56,925 nucleotides of DNA, filler included, from Hydrolagus affinis (GCA_012026655.1; 4 parts of 4 records of this genome joined end to end with filler, not necessarily neighbours in it); one strand, 5' to 3'. Shown: positions 1 to 42,897, counted from the whole stretch's first letter. Program-made: numbers and translations. Notes: generated from the sequence alone by a model not told the origin.

Positions 1-118
1 CAGGGCTCATTGACGACTCCACGAATGAATACACATGTATAATTGAGGAGCTGGCTTGTAGCTGATTTATTGTTGCATTTCGAACAATCACCTCGTCGTG
101 AGTCGACGGCTGTTGAGA

Positions 119-577
119 ATGATGCAGAATTTCACTGCAACATACGCTGTTATTAATTTTTTCGTATTATTGTTGTGTAAGTCGATAATGTGTTTGAACA
201 AAACTAGCTTCACTTTTCAATGCTGAATAAGTACAAATTAGCTTTGCTGATACAATCCGAATTTCTTTCAAAGATTGTTGTTCATTTCTATTCCCAGGTG
301 CCTTGGCTGAACGTGATGTGTCACAGAATCCTCAGGCACTGACAGAGAATGCAAATGGAAGTGTGTCTTTGGAGTGCAGAACCACTGGATACGTCAATTA
401 CTTTCATTGGTACAAAGAATATGAAAATGGTTCCATCCAATACTTGGTGATGGGAACCAGAGAGAAGAAGGAAGGGGCGAGGATAAGTGCCTTGGCTGAC
501 ACAAACGAGAAAAAAAGCACATTATCAATCAAATATGTGCGAGTGACAGACACCGCCACTTACATCTGTGCAACGAG
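119..577 (+). CDS. TCR alpha/delta-type V segment V1, apparently intact (leader 119-176, V exon 298-577)
   Basis: Leader MMQNFTATYAVINFFVLLL, GTAAGT donor at 177, CCCAG acceptor at 297, phase 1; exon open with Cys23 (SLEC), Trp41 (HWY), DTATYIC; RSS follows. Confidence 0.9.
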
Positions 578-616
578 CACAGTGCTGCGTGTCTCAGAGG
601 AGCCTGTCCAAAAACA
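578..616 (+). other. 23-RSS of V1
   Basis: CACAGTG 578-584, 23 bp, CCAAAAACA 608-616. Confidence 0.9.
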
Positions 617-1736
617 GGATGAGGACCCTGTAGTTGTACGTGTAAATACCTCATCTGGCAAACGAGTAGACCTGCGTTTCGATTCTTGGCTGGCCAATAC
701 ATTGTGCGATTTTCCTTATTCCGTACTTCTCTGCTAATTGTAGTAGTTTGTAGGTTTCTGGTTCGCCATTGATCCAGGGATCACTTTCCTGAGGATCGTA
801 ATTCATTTAAAAAAAGACAAATGTTCACTTGAATTCACGACTGCTTGTGAGACGCTGCTCTGCTGCAATTAGCCCAACATATGAGTTCAATTCAGTTCAT
901 AGCAGAACTCTGAATAATGAATCAGGCACAATTTAGAATGCATGGTTTATTACTACACTAATGCAGAGCATTATGTAGGAAACCGGCTGCTAGATGACTG
1001 GCCGATAGCCTTTCCTGGGTCAAAACTCCAATAACAAAATGGATGACTCACCATTACGGTTTGCTAGACAAGGCTGTGTGCAATTGGCTGCCGTGTATTT
1101 TATTGAGAAAATACATGATCGCTACCCATGGCAGTTCTTCTTGTGAAGAGATTAGAGATGTTTTGAAGTTGCGATAAAATGCTACATCAAAAACAGTAAC
1201 ATTTATTGTAACTCAAATTTGGATTCGTACGCTAGCATGCATGAGACATTTTCTTCACATGTTTACACACTGGTTAATAAAGTACAAACAAATCAAGTTT
1301 TGGTGATTAATTCTGCTAAAAAAATACTTGTGTTTTGTTCGCAAACGGCTGTAACCCAGAAGCCTGGAGATCAAATGGTGCAGGAAGGAAACATGCAAGT
1401 AACTAGGGCAGAGACATCAGAGAAAATGGTGATTTAACGTTTCTCCTGCCCATTGGCTCTGAACCCTCTCAATGACCTGTTTCGCCTCTTTACCATATTG
1501 GTGGAAGTGAACCAATGGGGGAGCGAGATGGCAGAACAGAGTGAATGATGCAAAGTGACAGAGACATGAATTTTGTGAATAACCTTCAGACCTGCTCATT
1601 CACAGCCGGTGGCAAATTCTGTATGCCACATCTTTTCTGCCCTCCACACCGCATCTAATTGCCTCCCAGCCAATGGTGTGGAACTCCTCCATCAAAGCTC
1701 CCTCAACACCACATGCCACTAAACACACATATCGCA

Positions 1737-2573
1737 ATGTATATTTACGTGGCAGCAGCCTTCATTATCTTCGCAGGTAAGCCACGCACTCAATCTATAT
1801 ATTCATACAAATATAATCCAATGAGTATGTTTACTTATTGCACGAATTAAACAATAAACTGCAGGGTTTGAAATGCGGTAGCATCCTGTTACTCAGTGAA
1901 TAGGGAGGGAGAATCCACAGGAAAGTTTACTTGCGCCAAACTCGCGTCCATTTTTCAGTAGTCTTACATATGAGCCCTACTGTAAGTAAACTTACTGATC
2001 GCGTCTCTGAAGCATTTAATTCAAACATGTAATCGTATATAAATCTATCGAGTAACTAGCTTTTTGCGGAAACTGATACTCGCAATTTGTTCTGACGTTT
2101 TGCCCAGAAAATGTGCTAAATTAATATTCTGTGAAGTGTTGTTGCTATCGCGGATATGGGCGAAGGCGCTGTAGCAAATGTAAGGATTACTTATATCGAT
2201 ATATATGCGATTATTATCATTCTTATTTACGTTATCATTGGTACATATTTATACTATTTCTAGGACATTGTGAAGGCGACGCTGTGACGCAGCTCCAATC
2301 AACTGTGACAGCATATCAAGGGGAGAATGCAATATTGTAGTTTAATTATACAGCTGCAAGTGGAACCAGTATATATCTGTTCTGGTACCGTCACTATCCC
2401 AACTCAGCTCCAGAATATATCCTCAGCACATCCACCAGCAACAGACCACAATATGCAGACTTTGCCAAAGGACGTTTCTCAGCAACAGTGGATAAAGTGG
2501 AGAGAACCGTACCATTACATATATCCCAAGTGAGAGTGACAGACTCGGCCGTGTATTGCTGTGCACTGAGCCC
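1737..2573 (+). pseudogene. V segment V2, pseudogene (leader 1737-1776, V exon 2264-2573)
   Basis: Leader MYIYVAAAFIIFA/GTAAG; in-frame TAG at 2338-2340 and Cys23 codon TTT; remainder FWYRHYP...DSAVYCCALS is close to V5. Confidence 0.9.
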
Positions 2574-2612
2574 CACAGAGACACCGATCAGCGCTACCGC
2601 CCTACAAAAACT
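2574..2612 (+). other. 23-RSS of V2
   Basis: CACAGAG, 23 bp, ACAAAAACT. Confidence 0.85.
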
Positions 2613-2621
2613 ACCATGTGG

Positions 2622-2965
2622 AGTCCTGTAGCTCAGTGGTTGCAGCACTCGCCTCACAGGCAAGACACGAGGGTTTGAATTCACGGCTAAGCGAAATGTG
2701 GGGCAAGTTTCCTTACTCCACATATATGCGGCTGTTTACATGGCAGTAAATCGTATTAGTGACTCGCTATTCCGGGCGTAACAATTGCTTCAGAATATTG
2801 ATGATATTAATAAATTGGTCATTCAATCCAATGGATCTCTGATGTGCAAACTTGGCTTTCGCGTTTCTCCCACACAATAAGATTTCAAAGCGTTTACAAT
2901 ACATTCTATGAAGCGCTCTGTTGCAACTCTAAGATGTGATATGGTGATATATCAAAGGCAAATGT
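2622..2965 (+). mobile_element. tRNA-headed SINE with Deu-type core and L2-like tail (representative of >20 full or partial copies in the window)
   Basis: Head GTCCTGTAGCTCAGTGGTT..GGTTTGAATTC (A/B boxes); other copies show core GGGACACTGCTGTGCGCAATTGGCTGCCGCGTTTC resembling the DeuSINE domain and tail AAGCGCTATATCAAATGCAAG-(ATT)n. Confidence 0.8.
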
Positions 2966-3175
2966 ATATCAAAGGAATATTTATATTTTTTATGTCTTTT
3001 GTGGAGACATTTACGATATAGAAGTTTTCTGTTCTGTTCTAGTCGATTGTAGAACATTCTAAAAAGTAAATATATCAATAGCTTGCGTTTGTACAGCGCC
3101 ATTCAAAAAGGGAATGTTGAGCCTGGCTGGAAACCATTTACTATGAAATGTCTCCAATTGTGCACTTTCTGTACC

Positions 3176-3310
3176 TGCAATCCACCAGGAGATGGCGCAC
3201 TAAGCACATGCAGTATCTGACATGAGCACGAAATGACATAACTTGCCTCATTCCTTTCTGTGATTAACTTCCTTGTGAGCCATAGCAGGTGCATCCTGTC
3301 ACAGTTGATG
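3176..3310 (+). promoter_or_regulatory. Conserved non-coding element with CTCF-like motif (copy 1)
   Basis: TGCAATCCA-CCAGGAGATGGCGC (core 3185-3198, 1 mismatch to CCASYAGRKGGCRS); homologous to 13071-13200 and 18497-18620. Confidence 0.55.
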
Positions 3311-3789
3311 TTGGAGCTTCATATACACTATTGCCGCTGCAGCTGAAAAGTGCTAATGTTTGTTTGCTTAAACATGATTAATGTTATTGTTATCTCAGAA
3401 TAATTTGATATGATACATTTTCTACCTTATTCTCTTCCCTGGAAATAATCAGCCACCATTGAGTGGCTCTCACTCTGTTGTTAAACGTGTTAGGCTTCCT
3501 CAATGGCTGCATGCGCACTTTCGTTGGTTAATTTGTGAAAGGAGCATAAAATTGTTCAGATAATTTTATTTTTGATTTAAAGGACTCATGATAATTGTGA
3601 GTTCGGGCCGTCCTGCCTTGGATGCAGTTCCAAACAGGACTGCAAAGCGATAGTCATTATAACAGTCCTTGCCTTGTACAACATGCCTTCATGTAGGAGT
3701 TGCTAGTAAAGAGTTCAGTTTGAATTAATTTAAAAATAAATGACTGCATTTTGAAGACAAATACAATTGGCAGTTTGAACATAGAAACT

Positions 3790-4950
3790 ATCCCACGAAT
3801 GAGAGACTTATTAGGAAATTAAAGACCCACGGCGTAAAAGGGACAGTGGCAGAGTGGATCCACAACTGGCTGCGAGACAGAAAGCAGACTGTTGTAGAGA
3901 GTGGCTGTTTTTCAGACTGGAGGGAGGTGAGGAGTGGTGTGCCACAGGGATCGGTTTTGGGAACATTGCTCTTTGTAATCTACATCAATGATCTGGACTT
4001 GGGTGTATGGAGTACAGTTTCCAAGTTTGCAGATGACACTAAGTTAGGGAGAATAGTAAATAGTGAGGAGGATAGTAGCCATCTGTATGAGGATATATAC
4101 AAATTGGTAAAGTGGGCAGACACATGGCAGATGAAGTTTAATGCAGAGAAGTGTGAGGAGATGCATTTTGGGAGAAGAAATGAAGGGAGGCAATATAGGC
4201 TAGATAGTACGATTTTAAATGGTTTGAAGGAACAGAGAGACCTGGGGATTTGTGTTAGTGACTCGTTGAAGGTGGCAGAACAGGTACACAGGTAGACAAG
4301 GCTGTTAAGAAGGCATATGGGATACTTGGCTTTATAAATAGCGGAATAGAATACAAAAGTCAGGAAGCGCTGACTAACCTCTACAAAATATTGGTGAGGC
4401 CTCAGCTGGAATACTGTGTTCAATTCTGGTCACCACACTACAGAAAGGATGTGAAGACATTGGAAAGAAGATTTACTAGGGTGGTGCCAGGATTGAGGGA
4501 CTTCAGCTATGAGGAGAGGCTAGATAGGCTAGGGTTATTCTCTCTAGAACAGAGAAGATTGAGGGGAGACCTAATAGAGGTTTATAAGATCATGAGGGGT
4601 TTCGACAGGGCAAATAGAGAAAAACTATTTCCACTCGTGGGCGAATCTGTGACTCGTGGTCACAGATTTAAAATAGTTTCAAGGCAAAGTAGAGGGGAGC
4701 TGAGGAGAATTTTTTTCACTCAGCGAGTTGTTCGAATCTGGAACGCATTGCCTGAAAAGGTGTTGGAGGCTGATTCGATAACAACTCTTAAGAGTGAATT
4801 AGATCTTTATTTAGGGAGAACATGTCTATTAGGCTATGGGGAGCGGGCAGGACAGTGGGATTGAATTGCTCTGTTCGAAGAGCCGGCACAGACTAGATGG
4901 GCCGAATGGCCTCCTTCTGTGCCGTGAAATTCTATGAATCTATGAATCTA
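3790..4950 (+). mobile_element. CR1-type LINE, 5'-truncated, frameshifted RT C-terminus and 3' tail
   Basis: SGVPQGSVLGTLLFVIYINDL, KFADDTKL, LVRPQLEYCVQFWSPHY; ends in (ATGAATCT)n tail. Confidence 0.93.
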
Positions 4951-33928: not shown

Positions 33929-35870
33929 AACAACAACAACAAAATTACACTTGTATAGCGCCTTTCACGTCGGGAGGATGTCGCAAGGCGCTGAACAGTT
34001 AGTTCGTGACCCTAGTAGGGGGGTTGGGGTTGGGGTAGGGGGAAGGGGAAAGAGAGTAGGGGAAGGGGAAGAGTTAGGAGGGGAGCCGAAGGTGTGGTCA
34101 AAGAGGAAGGTCTTGAGACCGGCTTTAAAGGAGGAAAGGGAGGAAGCAAGATGGAGGGACTGCTGGATGGAGTTCCATATTGTGGGAGCAGAGAGGCAGA
34201 AAGCCCGGCCACCAAGGGTTGGGCGGTTTGAGCGGCGGAAGCGGAGCAGGCCAGAGTCTGCTGAATGGAAGGGATGGGCAGGCTGACAGGAAGACAGCAG
34301 GTCGGAAAGATAGGTGGGGGCAAGGCCGTGAATGGCCTTGAAAGAGAGGACGAGGATATTTAATTCGATCCTCTGGGGGATGGGGAGCCAATGTAGACGG
34401 GCGAGGGTGGGAGTGATGTGGTCGCGGAGCCTGGTACAGGAGAGTACACGAGCTGCAGAATTCTGAATGATCTGCAACTTGTGAAGGGAGGAGCTAGGAA
34501 GGCCAACGAGGAGAGAGTTCCCGTAGTCGAGTCTGGAGGTGATAAAGTCGTGAATGAGAGTTTCGGCGGTATGAGGGGTGAGGTAGTGGCAGAGTCTGGC
34601 AATATTGCGGAGGTGGTGGAAGGCTGTGCCGGTCATGGAGCAGATATAAGGGAGGAAGGACAGTTCGGGGTCAAACAAGATGCCCAGATTCCTGACTGGC
34701 TTTGAGAGGTGGAGAGAGCAGCCTTGAATGCTGATGTTGTCAGCGCCTGAGGTGCGGATGCACTGACATGAGCCAATCAGGAGGGCTTCTGTCTTGTTGA
34801 CATTGAGCTGGAGGAAATTGGCCCTCGTCCAGGACTCAATGTCGGACAGATATACAGTCAGAACGCCAGTAGTCCTGGAGTCGAGGATGGATGCGGAGAG
34901 GTAGAGTTGGGTATCATCCGCATACAGTTTACCCCATGTCTGCGGATGATGTCACCCAGGGGGCTTGTGTATAAGGTGAAGAGCAGGGGACCAAGGACAG
35001 AACCCTGAGGAATGCCGCATGTGACTGTGCGAGGGCTGGAGGAAAAACCGTTCGAGGGGACGAAGTGAAGGCGGTGGGAGAGATATGACCGGAACCAGTC
35101 AAGGACACAGCCTTGAAGGTTGAGGACGGAGGAGAGGTGGTGGAGGAAGATTGAGTGATCATGGTATCAAAGGTGGTAGATACATCGAGGAGGACGAGGA
35201 GGCAGAGGGAGCCCTGGTCACAGATGGCCAGGATACTGTTTGTGACCTTGACTAGAGCAGTTTCCATGCTGTGGGAAGCGCGGAAACCCGATTGGAGGGG
35301 TTCGAGGAGTAAATGATTTGTGAGGAAAGAGCGGAGCTGGGAGGCAACCACTTTTTAGAAGACCTTGGAAAGGAAGCGGGGGTTGGAGATAGGCCAGTAG
35401 CTTGGTAGCTGTGATGCATCGAGGAAAGGCTTTTTTAGGATTGAGGTGATGGTGGCGGTTTTGGAGGGAGTGGGAACGGTCCCAGATGAGATGGACAGGT
35501 TGATAGTGTCGGTGATTAGAGGGACTAGAAGGTGGAGCTGGGTGGTGAGGAGAGGGGTGGGGGTGGTATCTAGGGAGTAGGTGGTGGGCTTCATGGAGGA
35601 GATGGTCTTAATGACGGAGGATGGTGAGATGGGGTCGAAGGTGTGGAAAGAGGGGTGTGTAGGAGGCAGGCTGTGTGGGGGAGATGAGAAGGGGGTGGAA
35701 ATTGGGGAGACAGTGACCGCAGAGTGGATTCCCTCGATTTGGGTCTTGAGGAAATCCAACATCTCTTCGCAGTGGGAGTTCGAGGAGAGGATCTGCGAGG
35801 CGAGGCGGTGGGGACGGAGGAGCTGGTTGGTGGTAGAGAAGGGAAGCTGGGGCTATCGTTGTAGCATATC
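33929..35870 (-). mobile_element. L2-type LINE, degenerate RT region and 3' tail
   Basis: [58 protein letters not shown]; (TTG)n tail at ~33930. Confidence 0.9.
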
Positions 35871-37131: not shown

Positions 37132-37653
37132 AAGCAGGTTTGGCTGTGGGTTCCTCACATCAGTTCCGTGCTCACTTTCATTTTGCAGGACACATCACCA
37201 GTGATCTCCGACAGGTAGACTTATCTTCAGGTGACACAAAAACAGAAGTCACTGGGAACACTCAACAGGTCAGGCAGAATCTATGGAGTGATTCAAGTGA
37301 TACAACGTTTCAGGTCCACGACCCTTCGTCAGAACTAGGGCAAGTCGGGAGGGAGAGGGTTTTAAGGATTAGCAGAGAGTGGGGAGGCAGGGCAAGCAAG
37401 ACAAAAGAGAAAACGGGATCCTTGCTGAAGAAATTCAAGACTCACAATATGCAGGAACCTTCTTCTTAACTGCAAGTACAACAACTTGGATTGATATAGT
37501 GCCCATCATGTGGGTGGTATCTGGGAGCGTGTCGGAACTTTCAAAGAGTGATCCTTGAGTCCCACGGACCTTCCTCCTCTACTGCCCATAATCTTAACAA
37601 AACATTGGAGAATATCCATTCTCGATCTCTAAAGTGAATTGGCTTGTGAGGCT

Positions 37654-37723
37654 ATGTGTGTACGGGAGCTTAAACTGAAGAGTCTGATTATTAATGGACC
37701 TGTTGTAATAATTTCTCCGACAG
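37654..37723 (+). CDS. Candidate first (leader) exon of the VJ-C1 gene
   Basis: ATG..MCVRELKLKSLIINGPVVIISPT, phase-1 GTAGAC donor compatible with the VJ exon; hydrophobic core weak. Confidence 0.35.
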
Positions 37724-38723
37724 GTAGACGTATCTTCGAGTGAAATGGCCATGTTAATCTGCTTCTACTTGGTGCTGTCACACACAGGTATGGAGCTTGT
37801 GAGCAATAACGTGAAGCACTCTGAACCTCTAACTCGCGTGTTTGGGTGCTAGATAAATGCAAGATGTTATTGTTGTTGAACATGGCTGTGAAAAACTGAG
37901 ATGGAAAAGCACATTGGAGTATGTAAAGTTAAAAGTGACAATGGGTCAGTGACTGGATGTAGTTGTGGAATATAGTGGTTAGATTACTTGCCTTGCAAGC
38001 GAGAGGACCTGGGTTTGATTACTGACTTGGGTGAAACGTTGGGCAAGTTTTTTTTTAACTTTACACGCCTCTGTTTGCCTAGCATTAATTGTTGTTAATC
38101 AATTGGTGGATTGCTTTCCGTGAGTAATAATCTCTTCAAAAATATACTATAATAATTTGGTTACTTGATTCACAAATTTGTGGGCGCAATTGGCTGCTGT
38201 ATTTCATCCTCGAATCATAATTCACTTTACAGTATATTCCATGAAGCTTTTTGAGACGTCTTAAAGATGTGTTAAGGCGCTATGTCAAATGCAAAGATTA
38301 TTATTAACAAAAGGGTTGATAGGATATGCAATGACCTGCTGGTTATACTGGGTCAGCCAAGATTTATTAACTTTCCAGAGGAAATGTGATAGATATCTAG
38401 AGAGGAATAAGCGGGTTAGGGTATTAGATTCCTAACATTCCTTCCTTCCTTAACATTCCTGCCTTCCCTAACCTGCCTTCTTCTGTGCTGTAAATGTCTA
38501 TTCAGTGCAGGATGTCGAGTGGGATGAAATGTGGTCCATGATAATTTTTGCAGTATAAAATGCGCTAACACACTTTTTGTTTCTACCTCTGACAGGCTGA
38601 GTTCAATTTGTTTGGTTTGAATTCTTGGCTTGTGAGGCTGCGTGTGTACAGGAGCTTAAACTGAAGAGTGTGATTATTAATGGACCTGTTGTAATAATTC
38701 CTTTCTGAATCACTTCCCTCCAG

Positions 38724-39083
38724 CAAGTCAACTGGCTCATCAGACTTTGCAGCAGTTTTATGCTCTTACCACATTGAAGGGAGACTGTGTGACATTGAGT
38801 TGTCTGTACCAAGAACCTTATTTAGAAAGGTTTACAGTGAAATGGTATTTCCTGTCTGATACGCTGAACTCCACCGAGAACATCGCAACATTATCATCTG
38901 AAAGTAGTCTGGTGAACAACTCTCACTATGCTGTCGGGCACGCTGTCACGAATAAAAGATTTACTCTGCAAATCAAGGATGTTCAAGTCAGTGACAAGGG
39001 AGAGTATTACTGTAGGTTGTTGGTAACTCTACCACCTCCGACAGTTACAAAAATGGGAACAAGAACGAGGCTGAATGTGACCG
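38724..39083 (+). CDS. Germline-joined VJ-type Ig domain exon of a non-rearranging IgSF gene
   Basis: CCTCCAG acceptor, GTAATT donor, phase 1-1, open; VTLSC, VKWY, LQIKDVQVSDKGEYYC followed without RSS by a J-like strand MGTRTRLNV. Confidence 0.88.
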
Positions 39084-40042
39084 GTAATTACTTCACACAT
39101 TTGATGAATTAGATTTGTTGCTCCATGGGTGATGGGTGGGGGTGGTAGGGGTGAATGGAGGTAAGAGGGGTCGCCTCGGAGCTGAACTGGCCCCAAGGTG
39201 ATATGTTTGACAATGGAATGTCAGAATCAAGCCCACCCTCTGTGACGGTCTCTAGTCCCGGATCATGAGCCAGACTGAGGTCCGCAGTATATCCAGGGCT
39301 TTCTCTCTCTCGCTCGCTGCTGATGACAGCACAGTCCAGCCTGGCTCATCGGCAGGACCTGGAAGGGCAGACCATTCACTGGGGGTCCTGTTAACCCTGC
39401 AGCCAAAGCCCAAACGGGTCTGTTGTTCCCAGTGACAAACGTAAGCGCTATATCAAATGCAAGGATTATTATTATTATTATAATAATTTCGCTGGTAAAA
39501 CTCCACCCAACCCTGGCATACAGGGGACTTTACTTACTTACTGAAATCTATGCCACAAATAGATGAATTTCAAGATCCTCACAATCCTTTTCAAATCTCT
39601 TCATGTCGTGGCACCTCCCCTACCTCCCAAACCTAGTTACCCTCCTGCTCCACTCGCTGTGTCTCATCTCGACTGAATCCGGCCTCGTGAGTTCAGTTCT
39701 ACTATCGGTGGTCGCAATTTCAGCACCAAATCTCTGGAAGTCTATTCCTCCGCTTTGCCCTCTTCCTTTCCCATCTGAAGATTGCACCTGTAGACCTTCC
39801 TGTTTGACTGTGCCTAACATCTGCTGTCCCCTCCCCCAGCTCCACATCGTGCTCCGCCACTCTCTAGTTCTCTGGGACACTACCCTGCAAGAGGGGAGCT
39901 GTGTAATTTCACGTTGTTGTAGTTGTTGTATGTATTGGCACAGTGTCCTGTCCACTAGAGCCACACTCATTGTGACACACTCTATCTGTTGCACTTGGAT
40001 TCACTCTCTTGTAATTTCTCTTCTGTTTCCTTTTGTAACTAG

Positions 40043-40363
40043 CTAGGCCTTCCCTTCGGATATTTCCATCTGTTCCTATGGAAAACTCTTCTTCCCGATG
40101 GGTCTCGGTCTCATGTTTGGCAAGTGGCTTCTACCCAGAGTCTATCGAGATGAGATTTCACAGCACCTGCCTTGCCCATCGCCTCACAAAATGGACGCTC
40201 TCCACTCCGACCAGAAACTCTGACAGAACCTACAACATCACAGCCGGTGTCTGTGTCCCCACAGCGACCTGCACTGAGGGAGCCCACATCACATGCACCG
40301 TCCGGCACCCAGCATTGCAGTCGGAGATAAACCAGACTGAGTTCATAATCCCACCACACAAGG
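40043..40363 (+). CDS. C1-set Ig domain exon of the same gene
   Basis: AACTAG acceptor, GTATGT donor, phase 1-1, open; ARPSLRIFP, VSCLASGFYPESI, RNSDRTYNI, ITCTVRHPAL. Confidence 0.88.
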
Positions 40364-42897
40364 GTATGTTACACCTTACTCAATACAATATTTCCATTTA
40401 TGTCGCTGTTGGTGTCACTGTTGACTTCTGGTCTTGATTTTGTGAAATTCCCATCAATTGATTAATCTGTGGAGTCCTGTAGCTCAATGATTAGAGCCCA
40501 CGCCTTACATGCAGGAGACCTGGGTTCAATTCCAGGCAGGCTGCAACGTTGGGCAAGTTTCCTTACCTCACATGCCTAATAATCCCACAAAAAAATAATA
40601 ATCAATTGGTCATTTCAATCCATGACTGTTTGTGGGACATTGTTGTGTGCGATCGGCTGCTGCGTTTCGCCCACAAATATACAGTCAATTCACTTTACAG
40701 TCATCAAATCAAAAACAGTGTCAGAGTGCTTCTCTGACTTTTTATAATAATAATAATTCTTGCATTTGATATAGCATCTTCTAGAGCAAAGTGCTTCACA
40801 GAATATACTGCAAAGTGAATCGACTGTAGACTTTATGGTTGAAATGAAGCAGCCAATTGCACACAGCAGTGTCCAACAAACAGATGGTGATTGAATGACA
40901 GCATTTATAAAATATATATTTATTAATCGTTCAATTAGGAAAGCAATCCGCCAATCGTCTAACAGCCGGGTTCCTACTGATTGCTAGGTATACAGAGGGG
41001 TATGGAGTAAGGAAACTTGTCTAATCTTTCACCCTGCACGGGAATTGAACCTGTTGTTTGTGAAGCTCTCACCACTATGCTACTCCATGAAGAAGTTCCT
41101 CCTAAACTACCTGTTAGATCTTTTCGTCGTGAAAGGCGCTATACAAATGTAATTTTTTTGTGGTTGTTGTTATTGTTGCTGCTGCCTCGCTTGTATATTT
41201 GTGCGCCCTCATTTCTGAAATATTTTTAGCTTTTGGTTTCCACGAAATGCTAATGTGTAAAGGTCACACGGGAAGCAACAGCTCCACAATGAGAGTGCAG
41301 TGCAGCCCGAGACAGCGCTACTGTAACCTGCGCACGTCTCAGTGTTTCCATTGATCAGTGCAGCAAGCGGAGAGCAGCCTGAAGCTCTGTGGCGTGAACT
41401 CTTAATGTTGCACCTTCGGTAGCTCAGGCAATCCATACTCCACCTTATGCCATTTCAGGCGTCCTGTGGTTAGATGAATTTATATATACGCACACAGCGA
41501 GGCCACCTGTATAAAACCACACGGAGACTCAGGGCGTAGATACCCGAAGTTGGGTGGCGAACGTGCAAATATGTCCAGGCTGTTTAGCAACAGGTTTGAG
41601 CCACCTCCCCCCCATCTTACCTCAACACATTGGTAGGACCAGAAGCTGTTGATGGCTGCCATTGTAGGTGTCAAGTGTGGCATTTTGTGCTATGGCGGGA
41701 CTGGACTCAACTCAACCAAACGATTGGAGGCTAGACAACAACAAACGATAATAATCCCTCCAAAAAAACCTATAATACAGGTAAATTGGTATTTTCAATC
41801 CACGACCGTTTGTGGGACACTGCTGTGCACAATTGGCTGCCGCGTTTCACCCACATAAAATGTGTATAGCTGCGTACAGTTAATTCAGCATATTCTGTGA
41901 AGTGCTTTGAGATGTCTACAAGACACTATGACAAATAGAAGGATTATTTTTTACTACTATTATTATGTGGAAACCACCCTTCACGTCAGGAGGATGTCCT
42001 AAGGTGCTGGACTGTCTGTCTGGGGTTTGGACCCGACCTGAGGATTGGGATCAGGAGGTGTTAAGGAGAGTGGGTGTAGGAGGGTGACTGAAAGTACAGT
42101 TGAAGAAGAGTCGGACCTTGAAGGAGGAAAGGAAGTGGGTGAGGTGAAGGGACTGTGGGATGGAGTTTCAAAGGGTTGAAGCAGAGAGGCTAAAGGCCCG
42201 ACTGTTGATGGTGGGATTGGCTGGAACAGGCTGGAGCCTGTTGAAAGGAGGTAGAGGACAGGTCAATATGGCAAGACAGTTAGACAGTATCTGTCTTCCC
42301 TTTGACTCCTTTAGTTGAGTTGAGTGCAAGCCATGCCCTGGGGACCATTGTAATAGTGGACACTGTTTTGCTGAAGCTGGGGTGGAGGGGAGCTGGGGTT
42401 GTGGGGAGGGTAAGAGAGGAGTTACATCCATAGGTGGGGAATAATTGCCCACTTACCTGAACGGTGGATTTCAATGATGGGATAATCATCTCAAAAGTTC
42501 CATCTCAAATCATTTCCTAACGGGATCCCTGCTGAAGAAATTCAAGACTCACAATATGCCAGAACCTTCTTCTTAACTGAGAATACAACAACTTGGATTG
42601 ATATAGTGCCCATCATCTGGGAGCGCTCAGACTCCCTATACTTCTGACATGTTCCTGCAGGTGGAGGGGAATTCTGAATATACTTGTGGCTGTGGGAAGA
42701 GCGGTGCAGATGGGGTTCGGTTCAATTTGCATCATTTAGGTGTAAGCCTGGCATTGTTGAGTGCACTGTTTTTCAGAGAAGATATAAACTCGGGTTCCAA
42801 AGGCTTGCTTGGGTGGATGTTAAAAATATAATTTGGGCAAGTTTCCTTACTCCACACACCTGACAATAATCCCTCCAAAATTTTAAAAATAATTTGG

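Follow-up and report, generated by a model that had tools for sequence, protein, structure and literature searches.

What defines CD28, CTLA-4 and related proteins is the possession of one V domain, with a PPP loop through which B7 ligands are bound. SIRP-alpha (PTPNS1), for its part, has two C1 domains and four tail tyrosines and binds CD47, and it is not known to have a PPP in its FG loop. PRARP—reportedly described from chicken by Fu and colleagues in 2019—is said to consist of non-rearranging, VJ-joined genes with an ITIM tail, which genes form a linked pair and occur in non-mammalian bony vertebrates. With respect to the CD28 family, a census recognizes nine members, each with a single V domain, and uses the pattern YxCx6PPPx4/5GxG to admit CD28X, a V-only protein with an EYEDM tail; in the same work the GxG is noted as a link between the CD28 family and domains of the VJ type (Quiniou et al. 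2024, PMC11599192). The definition of the family further comprises a PPP (or P-x-P) at the canonical place of the CDR3-like loop with a GxG after it, a cytoplasmic motif of the YxxM, YVKM or YEDM type (an ITIM-ITSM in PD-1), and a conserved synteny, be it the CD28/CTLA4/ICOS cluster or the blocks of the other members. Among the cartilaginous fishes, the elasmobranch genes UrIg and UrIg2 do not rearrange and encode a single-exon VJ followed by C1-type domains, of which there are several (9-11 in UrIg2), the products being disulfide-linked dimers with an Fc-like part and no ITIM tail (PMC12227049).

The gene considered here belongs to Hydrolagus affinis (GCA_012026655.1) and lies in one piece of the window, by which term we denote the whole stretch of DNA analysed (56,925 nucleotides, filler included). 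A first-pass annotation had placed at 38996-39083 a peptide with a triple proline within a VJ domain, which peptide was borne out by translation: the 27-mer GEYYCRLLVTLPPPTVTKMGTRTRLNV is encoded at window 38999-39079, inside that interval, and the plus-strand frame 38726-39085 has the C-terminal stretch ...DKGEYYCRLLVTLPPPTVTKMGTRTRLNVTG. The segment probably spans strands F and G, with the FG loop between them, in the single-exon VJ domain of an immunoglobulin-superfamily (IgSF) receptor that does not rearrange; of the gene for this receptor the piece holds a likely leader, the VJ exon and one C1 exon (Table 1).

The VJ exon matched the Pfam V-set model at E 2.2e-12, its reading frame is open, and all the framework residues are present; the V domain encoded is 28-64% identical to the V domains of our alignment of family members (A2) and, by BLAST, 35-64% identical to those of the chondrichthyan members. 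V and J are contiguous in this single exon and thus fused in the germline. No RSS heptamer was found within the VJ exon, and the sole CACAGTG of the window, a number in keeping with chance, is at 39939-39945 in the V-C1 intron with no A-rich nonamer 12 or 23 bp from it, so that the V-RSS-J separation typical of rearranging Ig and TCR genes does not occur in the Hydrolagus gene. Since the three proline codons all differ, the PPP is not a slippage repeat. In the GxG bulge of the G strand the second glycine is replaced by arginine (G-T-R), and the GNGT sequon that most relatives in A2 keep is lost, the G strand of the Callorhinchus relative P0008 still being G-T-G-T-R-L-N-V. In addition, the V domain has an extra, non-canonical cysteine (Cys21, in KGDCVTLSC), which residue is an asparagine in the genomic contigs of a related organism through a change at window 38786-38787 (TGT to AAT), the result being an N-V-T sequon in that organism.

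Table 1. Features of the VJ-C1 gene of Hydrolagus affinis, in window coordinates.
Feature	Position	Strand	Details
Candidate leader exon, coding part	37745..37787	+	ATG GCC ATG ... = MAMLICFYLVLSHT plus one base; donor G|GTATGG, phase 1; from ORF and donor scan
Germline-joined VJ exon (V-set Ig domain)	38724..39083	+	Acceptor ccctccag|CA at 38722-38723; donor ACC G|gtaat at 39084; phase 1 at both ends
F-strand Cys (Cys96 of the exon translation)	39011..39013	+	Invariant column C96 in A2; anchors the C-x6-PPP register
PPP of the FG (CDR3-equivalent) loop	39032..39040	+	Codons CCA CCT CCG; Cys+7 to +9
J-like G strand, G-T-R-T-R-L-N-V	39056..39079	+	Family consensus G-N-G-T-x-L-x-V
C1-set Ig exon	40043..40363	+	Acceptor aactag|CT; donor AAG G|gtatg; phase 1 at both ends

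The ATG of the candidate leader is found ~940 bp upstream of the V exon; the peptide it would encode is similar to leaders of the family, such as MRISFYLFLQ and MCEMKIFYTFLQ, and the predicted junction between leader and V reads ...HT-A-SQLAHQTLQQ. The V and C1 exons join in frame (G+CT = Ala). That the gene, unlike the single-V CD28 family, adds a C1 exon had been proposed from the outset, and the proposal was correct: the exon matched the Pfam C1-set model at E 1.5e-10, its phase fits that of the V exon, and it is 26-48% identical to the C1 domains of the family, with conservation of the invariant C24, F29-Y30-P31, C42, C76 and C84, that is, of all four family-invariant cysteines and of the FYP motif. 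One further cysteine in C1 appears unpaired, as does C21 in V.

Single-cell RNA reads from a closely related organism covered the leader, V and C1 bins at depths of 4-9 and in one orientation (~4 in the leader and 8-9 in C1), as compared to 0-3 in the unique intronic and intergenic sequence. No spliced read was recovered, the read joints having been swamped by repeats, so that the joins between leader, V and C1 rest on splice signals, phase and homology. With respect to the genomic contigs of the related organism, the two Ig exons exhibited 6 synonymous and 3 amino-acid changes, none of them listed in the PPP codons.

A tblastn search of the window with ten family proteins detected only V and C1, with no transmembrane (TM), tail or leader exon; a hydrophobic ORF at 41160-41230 was considered as an exon and rejected, for it sits in a high-copy repeat. 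Since the intron between C1 and TM occupies 5-8 kb in the homologues (5.3 kb in skate, 7.9 kb in gar), and the sequence from C1 to the end of the piece amounts to 2.5 kb, the missing TM and tail exons are to be expected, and they are probably located beyond that end. The piece carries no other gene. These same data bear on the possibility that we are dealing with a non-functional relic, namely a decaying pseudogene or a fragment reduced to the leader, V and C1 exons. The degenerate G-T-R bulge, the unpaired-looking cysteines in V and C1, and the lack of a TM or tail exon within 2.5 kb after C1 would all be compatible with such a decay; but both Ig exons are open and complete in their framework residues, with canonical phase-1 splice sites, the RNA reads over the exons are in one orientation, the substitutions relative to the related organism are mostly synonymous, and the length of the homologous introns is enough to account for the exons not seen, all of which make a relic improbable.

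To find relatives we searched 1.84 billion representative proteins with the V exon as the query and took whole-domain matches as members. Besides the holocephalan Callorhinchus (64% identity over the 66 V residues of a partial gene model), these members came from sharks (Scyliorhinus, Heterodontus, Rhincodon, Stegostoma, Chiloscyllium, Pristiophorus, Heptranchias and Mustelus), from rays and skates (Leucoraja, Amblyraja, Narcine, Hemitrygon and Mobula), and from bony vertebrates, these being the spotted gar, the axolotl, Bombina and many turtles; a divergent relative from a cyprinid (P0072) is built as V(PPP)-C twice. Word-indexed protein searches reached few members—10 with a shark query, 9 with the family profile, and 9, exclusively from turtles, with a turtle query, which thus brought up no bird homologue. 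The names assigned automatically to these proteins are inconsistent, including SIRP-alpha-like, Ig kappa/lambda light chain-like, CEACAM1-like, protein turtle-like, hemicentin-like and uncharacterized. The full-length members nevertheless have one plan, which consists of a leader, a V (VJ) domain, a C1 domain and a transmembrane segment, followed by a tail that contains no YxxM but a pair of ITIM-like motifs, typically ICYAEL and VVYSxV, some 20 residues from each other. In the tree of the family V domains the Hydrolagus gene pairs with Callorhinchus inside the chondrichthyan group. We therefore regard the Hydrolagus gene as, in all likelihood, the holocephalan member of an old and uncurated family of non-rearranging VJ-C1 receptors with ITIM tails.

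Some particularities of the individual members deserve mention. The axolotl (Ambystoma mexicanum) has two proteins with the PPP loop: P0016, with a V-C1-V-C1 model (either two tandem units or a merged pair), and P0146, a V-only transmembrane protein bearing ITIM/ITSM motifs (IVYTVV, TEYSVL), which latter example shows that members of the lineage may lack C1. P0016 and P0146 are neighbouring accessions, in a disposition that resembles a paired-gene arrangement. The Callorhinchus milii gene model (P0008; UniRef A0A4W3J4B0) is mis-spliced, with intron read-through after V and translation of the C1 exon in the wrong frame; the alignment of its tail (53%) falls on window 39840-40271, where the frame used is not that of the exon. 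In gar and skate the 10-kb flanks of the family gene contain a NACHT NLR gene, GTF3C6 and a BAAT-like gene. The NACHT/NLRC4_HD2 NLR gene lies less than 10 kb from the family gene in both species (1-4205 of the gar locus L001, 30323-31916 of the little-skate locus L002), which proximity could be either a conserved linkage or a coincidence, given the many NLR genes of fish.

The domain plan also bears on whether the gene might be an orthologue of UrIg or UrIg2, or else a V segment of a rearranging antigen receptor. A single VJ exon followed by C1 is what both UrIg genes have, the Hydrolagus C1 exon matched the UrIg2 C domains at ~20 bits each, and several relatives received light chain-like names. 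On the other side, the V domain of UrIg2 (9dmx) was not among the best 60 PDB matches of the V exon, and where the UrIg genes would have at least three C1-type domains—several in UrIg, 9-11 in UrIg2—the homologues have one C1 followed by TM and ITIMs; for a rearranging segment, the sole CACAGTG is intronic, lacks a nonamer and is expected by chance. Both versions are already contradicted by the domain count and by the absent V similarity, and we give them practically no credence.

As to the loop itself, the columns that vary little or not at all in the 19 aligned V domains of A2 comprise, besides the usual framework residues, the three prolines: P103 and P105 without exception, and P104 in 18 domains, Narcine having P-A-P. 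Throughout, the PPP occupies Cys+7 to +9, with five residues separating it from the G(x)G site, and the full C-x6-PPP-x5-GxG is found in most of those domains, the Hydrolagus gene being degenerate in its last element. The conservation of the triple proline in other chondrichthyans, which the first-pass annotation had set as one test of its own proposal, accordingly holds and extends beyond that class. The 150 best matches included 135 non-family proteins, and among these the PPP occurred in the same register only in the cyprinid P0072, in both of its V domains; P0072 apart, none of the 727 other F-strand motifs of the non-family proteins in that search had a PPP in the C-x6-PPP register.

The resemblance might still have been fortuitous or generic, a PPP in a CDR3-like loop having as little meaning as in a rearranged receptor. 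A human TCR V-delta (PDB 1tvd, chain A) has the identical hexamer TLPPPT in its rearranged junctional CDR3, which example indicates that a lone occurrence of PPP can be due to chance. Furthermore, in the ungapped match to CTLA-4 that had been reported at first, the alignment stands, with identity at 9 of 27 positions (G, Y, C, PPP, G, T and V), but the GxG was overstated, the second glycine being an arginine (G-T-R-T), and 5 of the 9 identities belong to the generic V/J framework (G-x-Y-x-C and part of the J motif). Against a chance origin, the PPP of 1tvd is in another register, closer to the cysteine (Cys+5 to +7); across cartilaginous and bony vertebrates the spacing is fixed, the outer prolines never vary, and the middle one hardly does; the register is absent from the 727 background motifs; and the matches in the PDB described below are restricted to CTLA-4, CD28 and one unnamed chain. 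Chance is already contradicted by this conservation within the family and is, in our estimation, very improbable; at the family level the alignment confirms that the PPP loop is real and more than a random occurrence. The hallmark of the family is a fixed FG loop, C-x6-PPP-x5-G(N)G-T-x-L-x-V, and it seems likely that this loop has been kept since the split between cartilaginous and bony vertebrates.

For the comparison with proteins of solved structure we employed a PDB set of 177,635 sequences. A family profile of the whole V was uninformative, because multi-Ig proteins sum many partial matches; for that reason we resorted to profiles of 44 and 29 residues. The 29-position profile (G-x-Y-x-C ... 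L-x-V) retrieved 23 sequences in total, of which 18 are named CTLA-4 (17 at E ~1e-4 and one at 0.006) and four CD28 (E ~0.04), the remaining one being an unnamed chain, 4n8p_A (E 0.002); no Ig, TCR, SIRP, PD-1 or NKp30 was retrieved from the 177,635 sequences. With the 44-position profile, CTLA-4 was the top single-domain match (38.8 bits, E 5e-9, 39-40 of the 44 positions aligned) and outscored every antibody or TCR V domain. The V-only member of the axolotl matched CTLA-4 at E 2e-5 over the same F-G segment, whereas the 44-mer of the Hydrolagus gene itself reached only E 0.034, on par with Ig light chains, because its G strand drifted from G-N-G-T to G-T-R-T. The CTLA-4 signal is thus, as far as these profiles indicate, a property of the family and not of the Hydrolagus sequence alone. 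The residues that flank the PPP are not conserved: T-L-PPP-T-V is found in Hydrolagus as opposed to M-Y...Y in the CTLA-4 hexamer that the first-pass annotation names as the B7-binding loop.

The V domain as a whole gave a different picture. In a phmmer search of the PDB with the Hydrolagus V, the leading matches were the IgNAR V, TCR V-delta, Ig light chains and PD-1 (E 2e-6 to 1e-5), and neither CTLA-4 nor CD28 was among the best 60; the Heterodontus V, for its part, best matched TCR alpha, the Ig light chain and the SIRP-alpha V, the last at E 8e-8 and no better than TCR alpha. An AlphaFold2 model of the Hydrolagus V (pLDDT 92) had the V domains of TCR alpha/delta as its closest structures in Foldseek, and the best 50 matches of that model in VIA-align were all TCR V domains (Z 17-18, rmsd ~2 A). 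Among the Swiss-Prot models, Foldseek placed CTLA-4 at ranks 3, 4, 7, 10 and 14 and PD-1 at ranks 5 and 12, directly after TCR alpha, with CD28 at ranks 21 and 27; the identities to the Hydrolagus V were 16-19% for CTLA-4 and CD28 and 23% for PD-1. Outside the loop, then, the modelled V domain is TCR/SIRP-like in its appearance, and the V of TCR alpha/delta constitutes its best match in both whole-domain sequence and fold; nevertheless, the TCR is assembled by V(D)J recombination, whereas V and J are germline-fused in Hydrolagus, with no RSS.

A two-domain model from Heterodontus (V-C1, pLDDT 88.7) is extended in the manner of B7-H6, tapasin, SIRP-alpha and nectin, and aligned domain by domain with Fab and TCR chains of the PDB. 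From the ESM Atlas came nothing more specific than V-C1 clusters of a general kind, tapasin-related and SIRP among them. In Swiss-Prot the highest identity of this two-domain model was to rodent SIRP-alpha (23-25%, TM 0.68-0.69), which protein resembles the family in having a VJ-type N-terminal V, C1-set domain(s), a transmembrane segment and ITIM tyrosines; a VJ-type V followed by a C1-set domain is thus common to both, but all the members of the VJ-C1 family have one C1 where SIRP-alpha has two.

From these results the structural link to the CD28/NKp30 group that was suggested at first survives in part. Among solved structures the signature of F strand, FG loop and G strand is specific to CTLA-4 and CD28, the unnamed 4n8p_A aside, and, rearranging receptors aside, the Swiss-Prot models closest in structure are those of CTLA-4 and PD-1; the whole-domain neighbours, however, are TCR, Ig, IgNAR and SIRP-alpha. 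The kinship with NKp30 found no echo, NKp30 having never surfaced in any search. Nor can the binding of a B7-family ligand be deduced, since the M-Y...Y contact residues at the flanks of the PPP are absent; such binding is unsupported by any residue outside the PPP and is a matter of speculation.

A stronger version of that link would make the VJ-C1 family a deep homologue of CD28 and CTLA-4—a sister group or an ancestral form that kept the C1 domain—whose PPP loop would serve, like that of CTLA-4 and CD28, to bind a ligand of the B7 family. The FG loop has the same length and register in both (YxC-x6-PPP-x5-GxG), the G-N-G-T is common to CTLA-4/CD28 and to most family members, the 29-residue profile matched only CTLA-4, CD28 and one unnamed chain in the PDB, the V folds are comparable (TM 0.76-0.80), and CTLA-4 and PD-1 are the top non-rearranging fold matches. 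The pattern YxCx6PPPx4/5GxG by which CD28X was admitted, a PPP followed by GxG, is present here as C-x6-PPP-x5-G with the Hydrolagus GxG degenerate, and GxG is what links the CD28 family to VJ-type domains (PMC11599192). A V-only member with ITIM/ITSM motifs exists in the axolotl (P0146), and CD28HL3 of bony fish carries an ITIM pair similar to that of the VJ-C1 family (PMC11599192). Several observations nevertheless point in the opposite direction. CD28 and CTLA-4 have a single V, a stalk, a transmembrane segment and tails of the YxxM/YVKM/YEDM type, whereas in the VJ-C1 family a C1-set exon follows the V (V-C1-TM in the homologues), the tails have paired ITIMs instead of YxxM, and the MY...Y contact residues at the flanks are missing. 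The whole domain is closer to the V of TCR, Ig and SIRP-alpha, the identity to CTLA-4 being only 16-19%. The Pfam ICOS V-set model matched 5 of 19 family members, all below threshold, and no accession of the VJ-C1 family figures in the supplements of the census (Quiniou et al. 2024, PMC11599192). Finally, the neighbours in gar and skate (the NACHT NLR gene, GTF3C6 and the BAAT-like gene) are not CD28X or CD28HL3 synteny markers, none of those that the text of the census names being present in the 10-kb flanks, which are short (PMC11599192). On balance we consider this deep homology rather unlikely. That the VJ-C1-ITIM family would be the surviving sister or ancestral form of the CD28/CTLA-4 co-receptors, with a B7-type ligand bound through the PPP, is likewise a doubtful proposition; if true, it would mean that the co-stimulatory and co-inhibitory receptors and the antigen receptors descend from one VJ-C1 gene type. 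For the loop by itself, either common descent with the CD28 family or convergence is possible.

The reading we prefer, that of a non-rearranging VJ-C1 receptor with an ITIM tail, suggests a putative function. The product would be a type I membrane receptor with a TCR-like V, at whose membrane-distal end a rigid loop with a polyproline tip would provide the ligand-contact surface; the C1 would be a spacer, the two domains being extended as in SIRP-alpha or B7. Once the ligand is engaged, the two tail motifs, (I/V)CYAEL and (V/I)VYSxV, would be phosphorylated and would then recruit SHP-type phosphatases, with inhibition of the cell as the outcome. To judge from the tails of the homologues, signalling would be inhibitory, and the PPP loop is the presumed site of contact; an inhibitory surface receptor that uses a rigid proline loop for contact is thus the most likely function.

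The family may be the same as PRARP, the description of which would fit the axolotl pair P0016/P0146 and the taxon range of the VJ-C1 family. Were the two the same, the chondrichthyan members and the CTLA-4-type loop would extend PRARP. In any event, from chimaeras to turtles this family has a loop and G strand of the CTLA-4/CD28 type on a V framework like that of the TCR, together with a C1 domain and a tail of the inhibitory kind, which combination makes it testable whether the PPP loop was ancestral to VJ-C1 receptors and inherited by the CD28 family, or was acquired independently. It also represents an unstudied candidate for an inhibitory checkpoint receptor in non-mammalian vertebrates, whose gene models carry misleading automatic names.

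The window had a number of other features. A 78-nt direct repeat, 94% identical between its copies, occurs at window 37639-37716 and 38625-38702 with a spacing of 986 bp; the first copy stops ~30 bp short of the ATG of the candidate leader, the second ~20 bp short of the acceptor of the V exon, and both lead into a pyrimidine tract plus AG. This repeat may be a duplicated intron end, and the leader exon may itself be preceded by an acceptor, at 37722-37723. On the minus strand, three long ORFs of 237, 140 and 135 aa follow one another at 33965-35762, in a block rich in GC (0.52-0.55); one of these ORFs has a motif like the reverse-transcriptase LLDxSxxFDT; these minus-strand ORFs gave no match in Pfam, and the block is probably a degraded LINE. 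Very high-copy repeats are located at ~39300-39500, 40470-40900, 41700-42100 and 42700-42890, with a read/contig depth of 10^4-10^5 times that of unique sequence. Because read joints link 39443 with 40787, 40701 with 41890, and 38020 with 42833, these repeats would correspond to one or two interspersed families present in both introns and downstream; the loose-end consensus GTTCGAATCC... resembles a tRNA-derived SINE, although ARAGORN called no tRNA.
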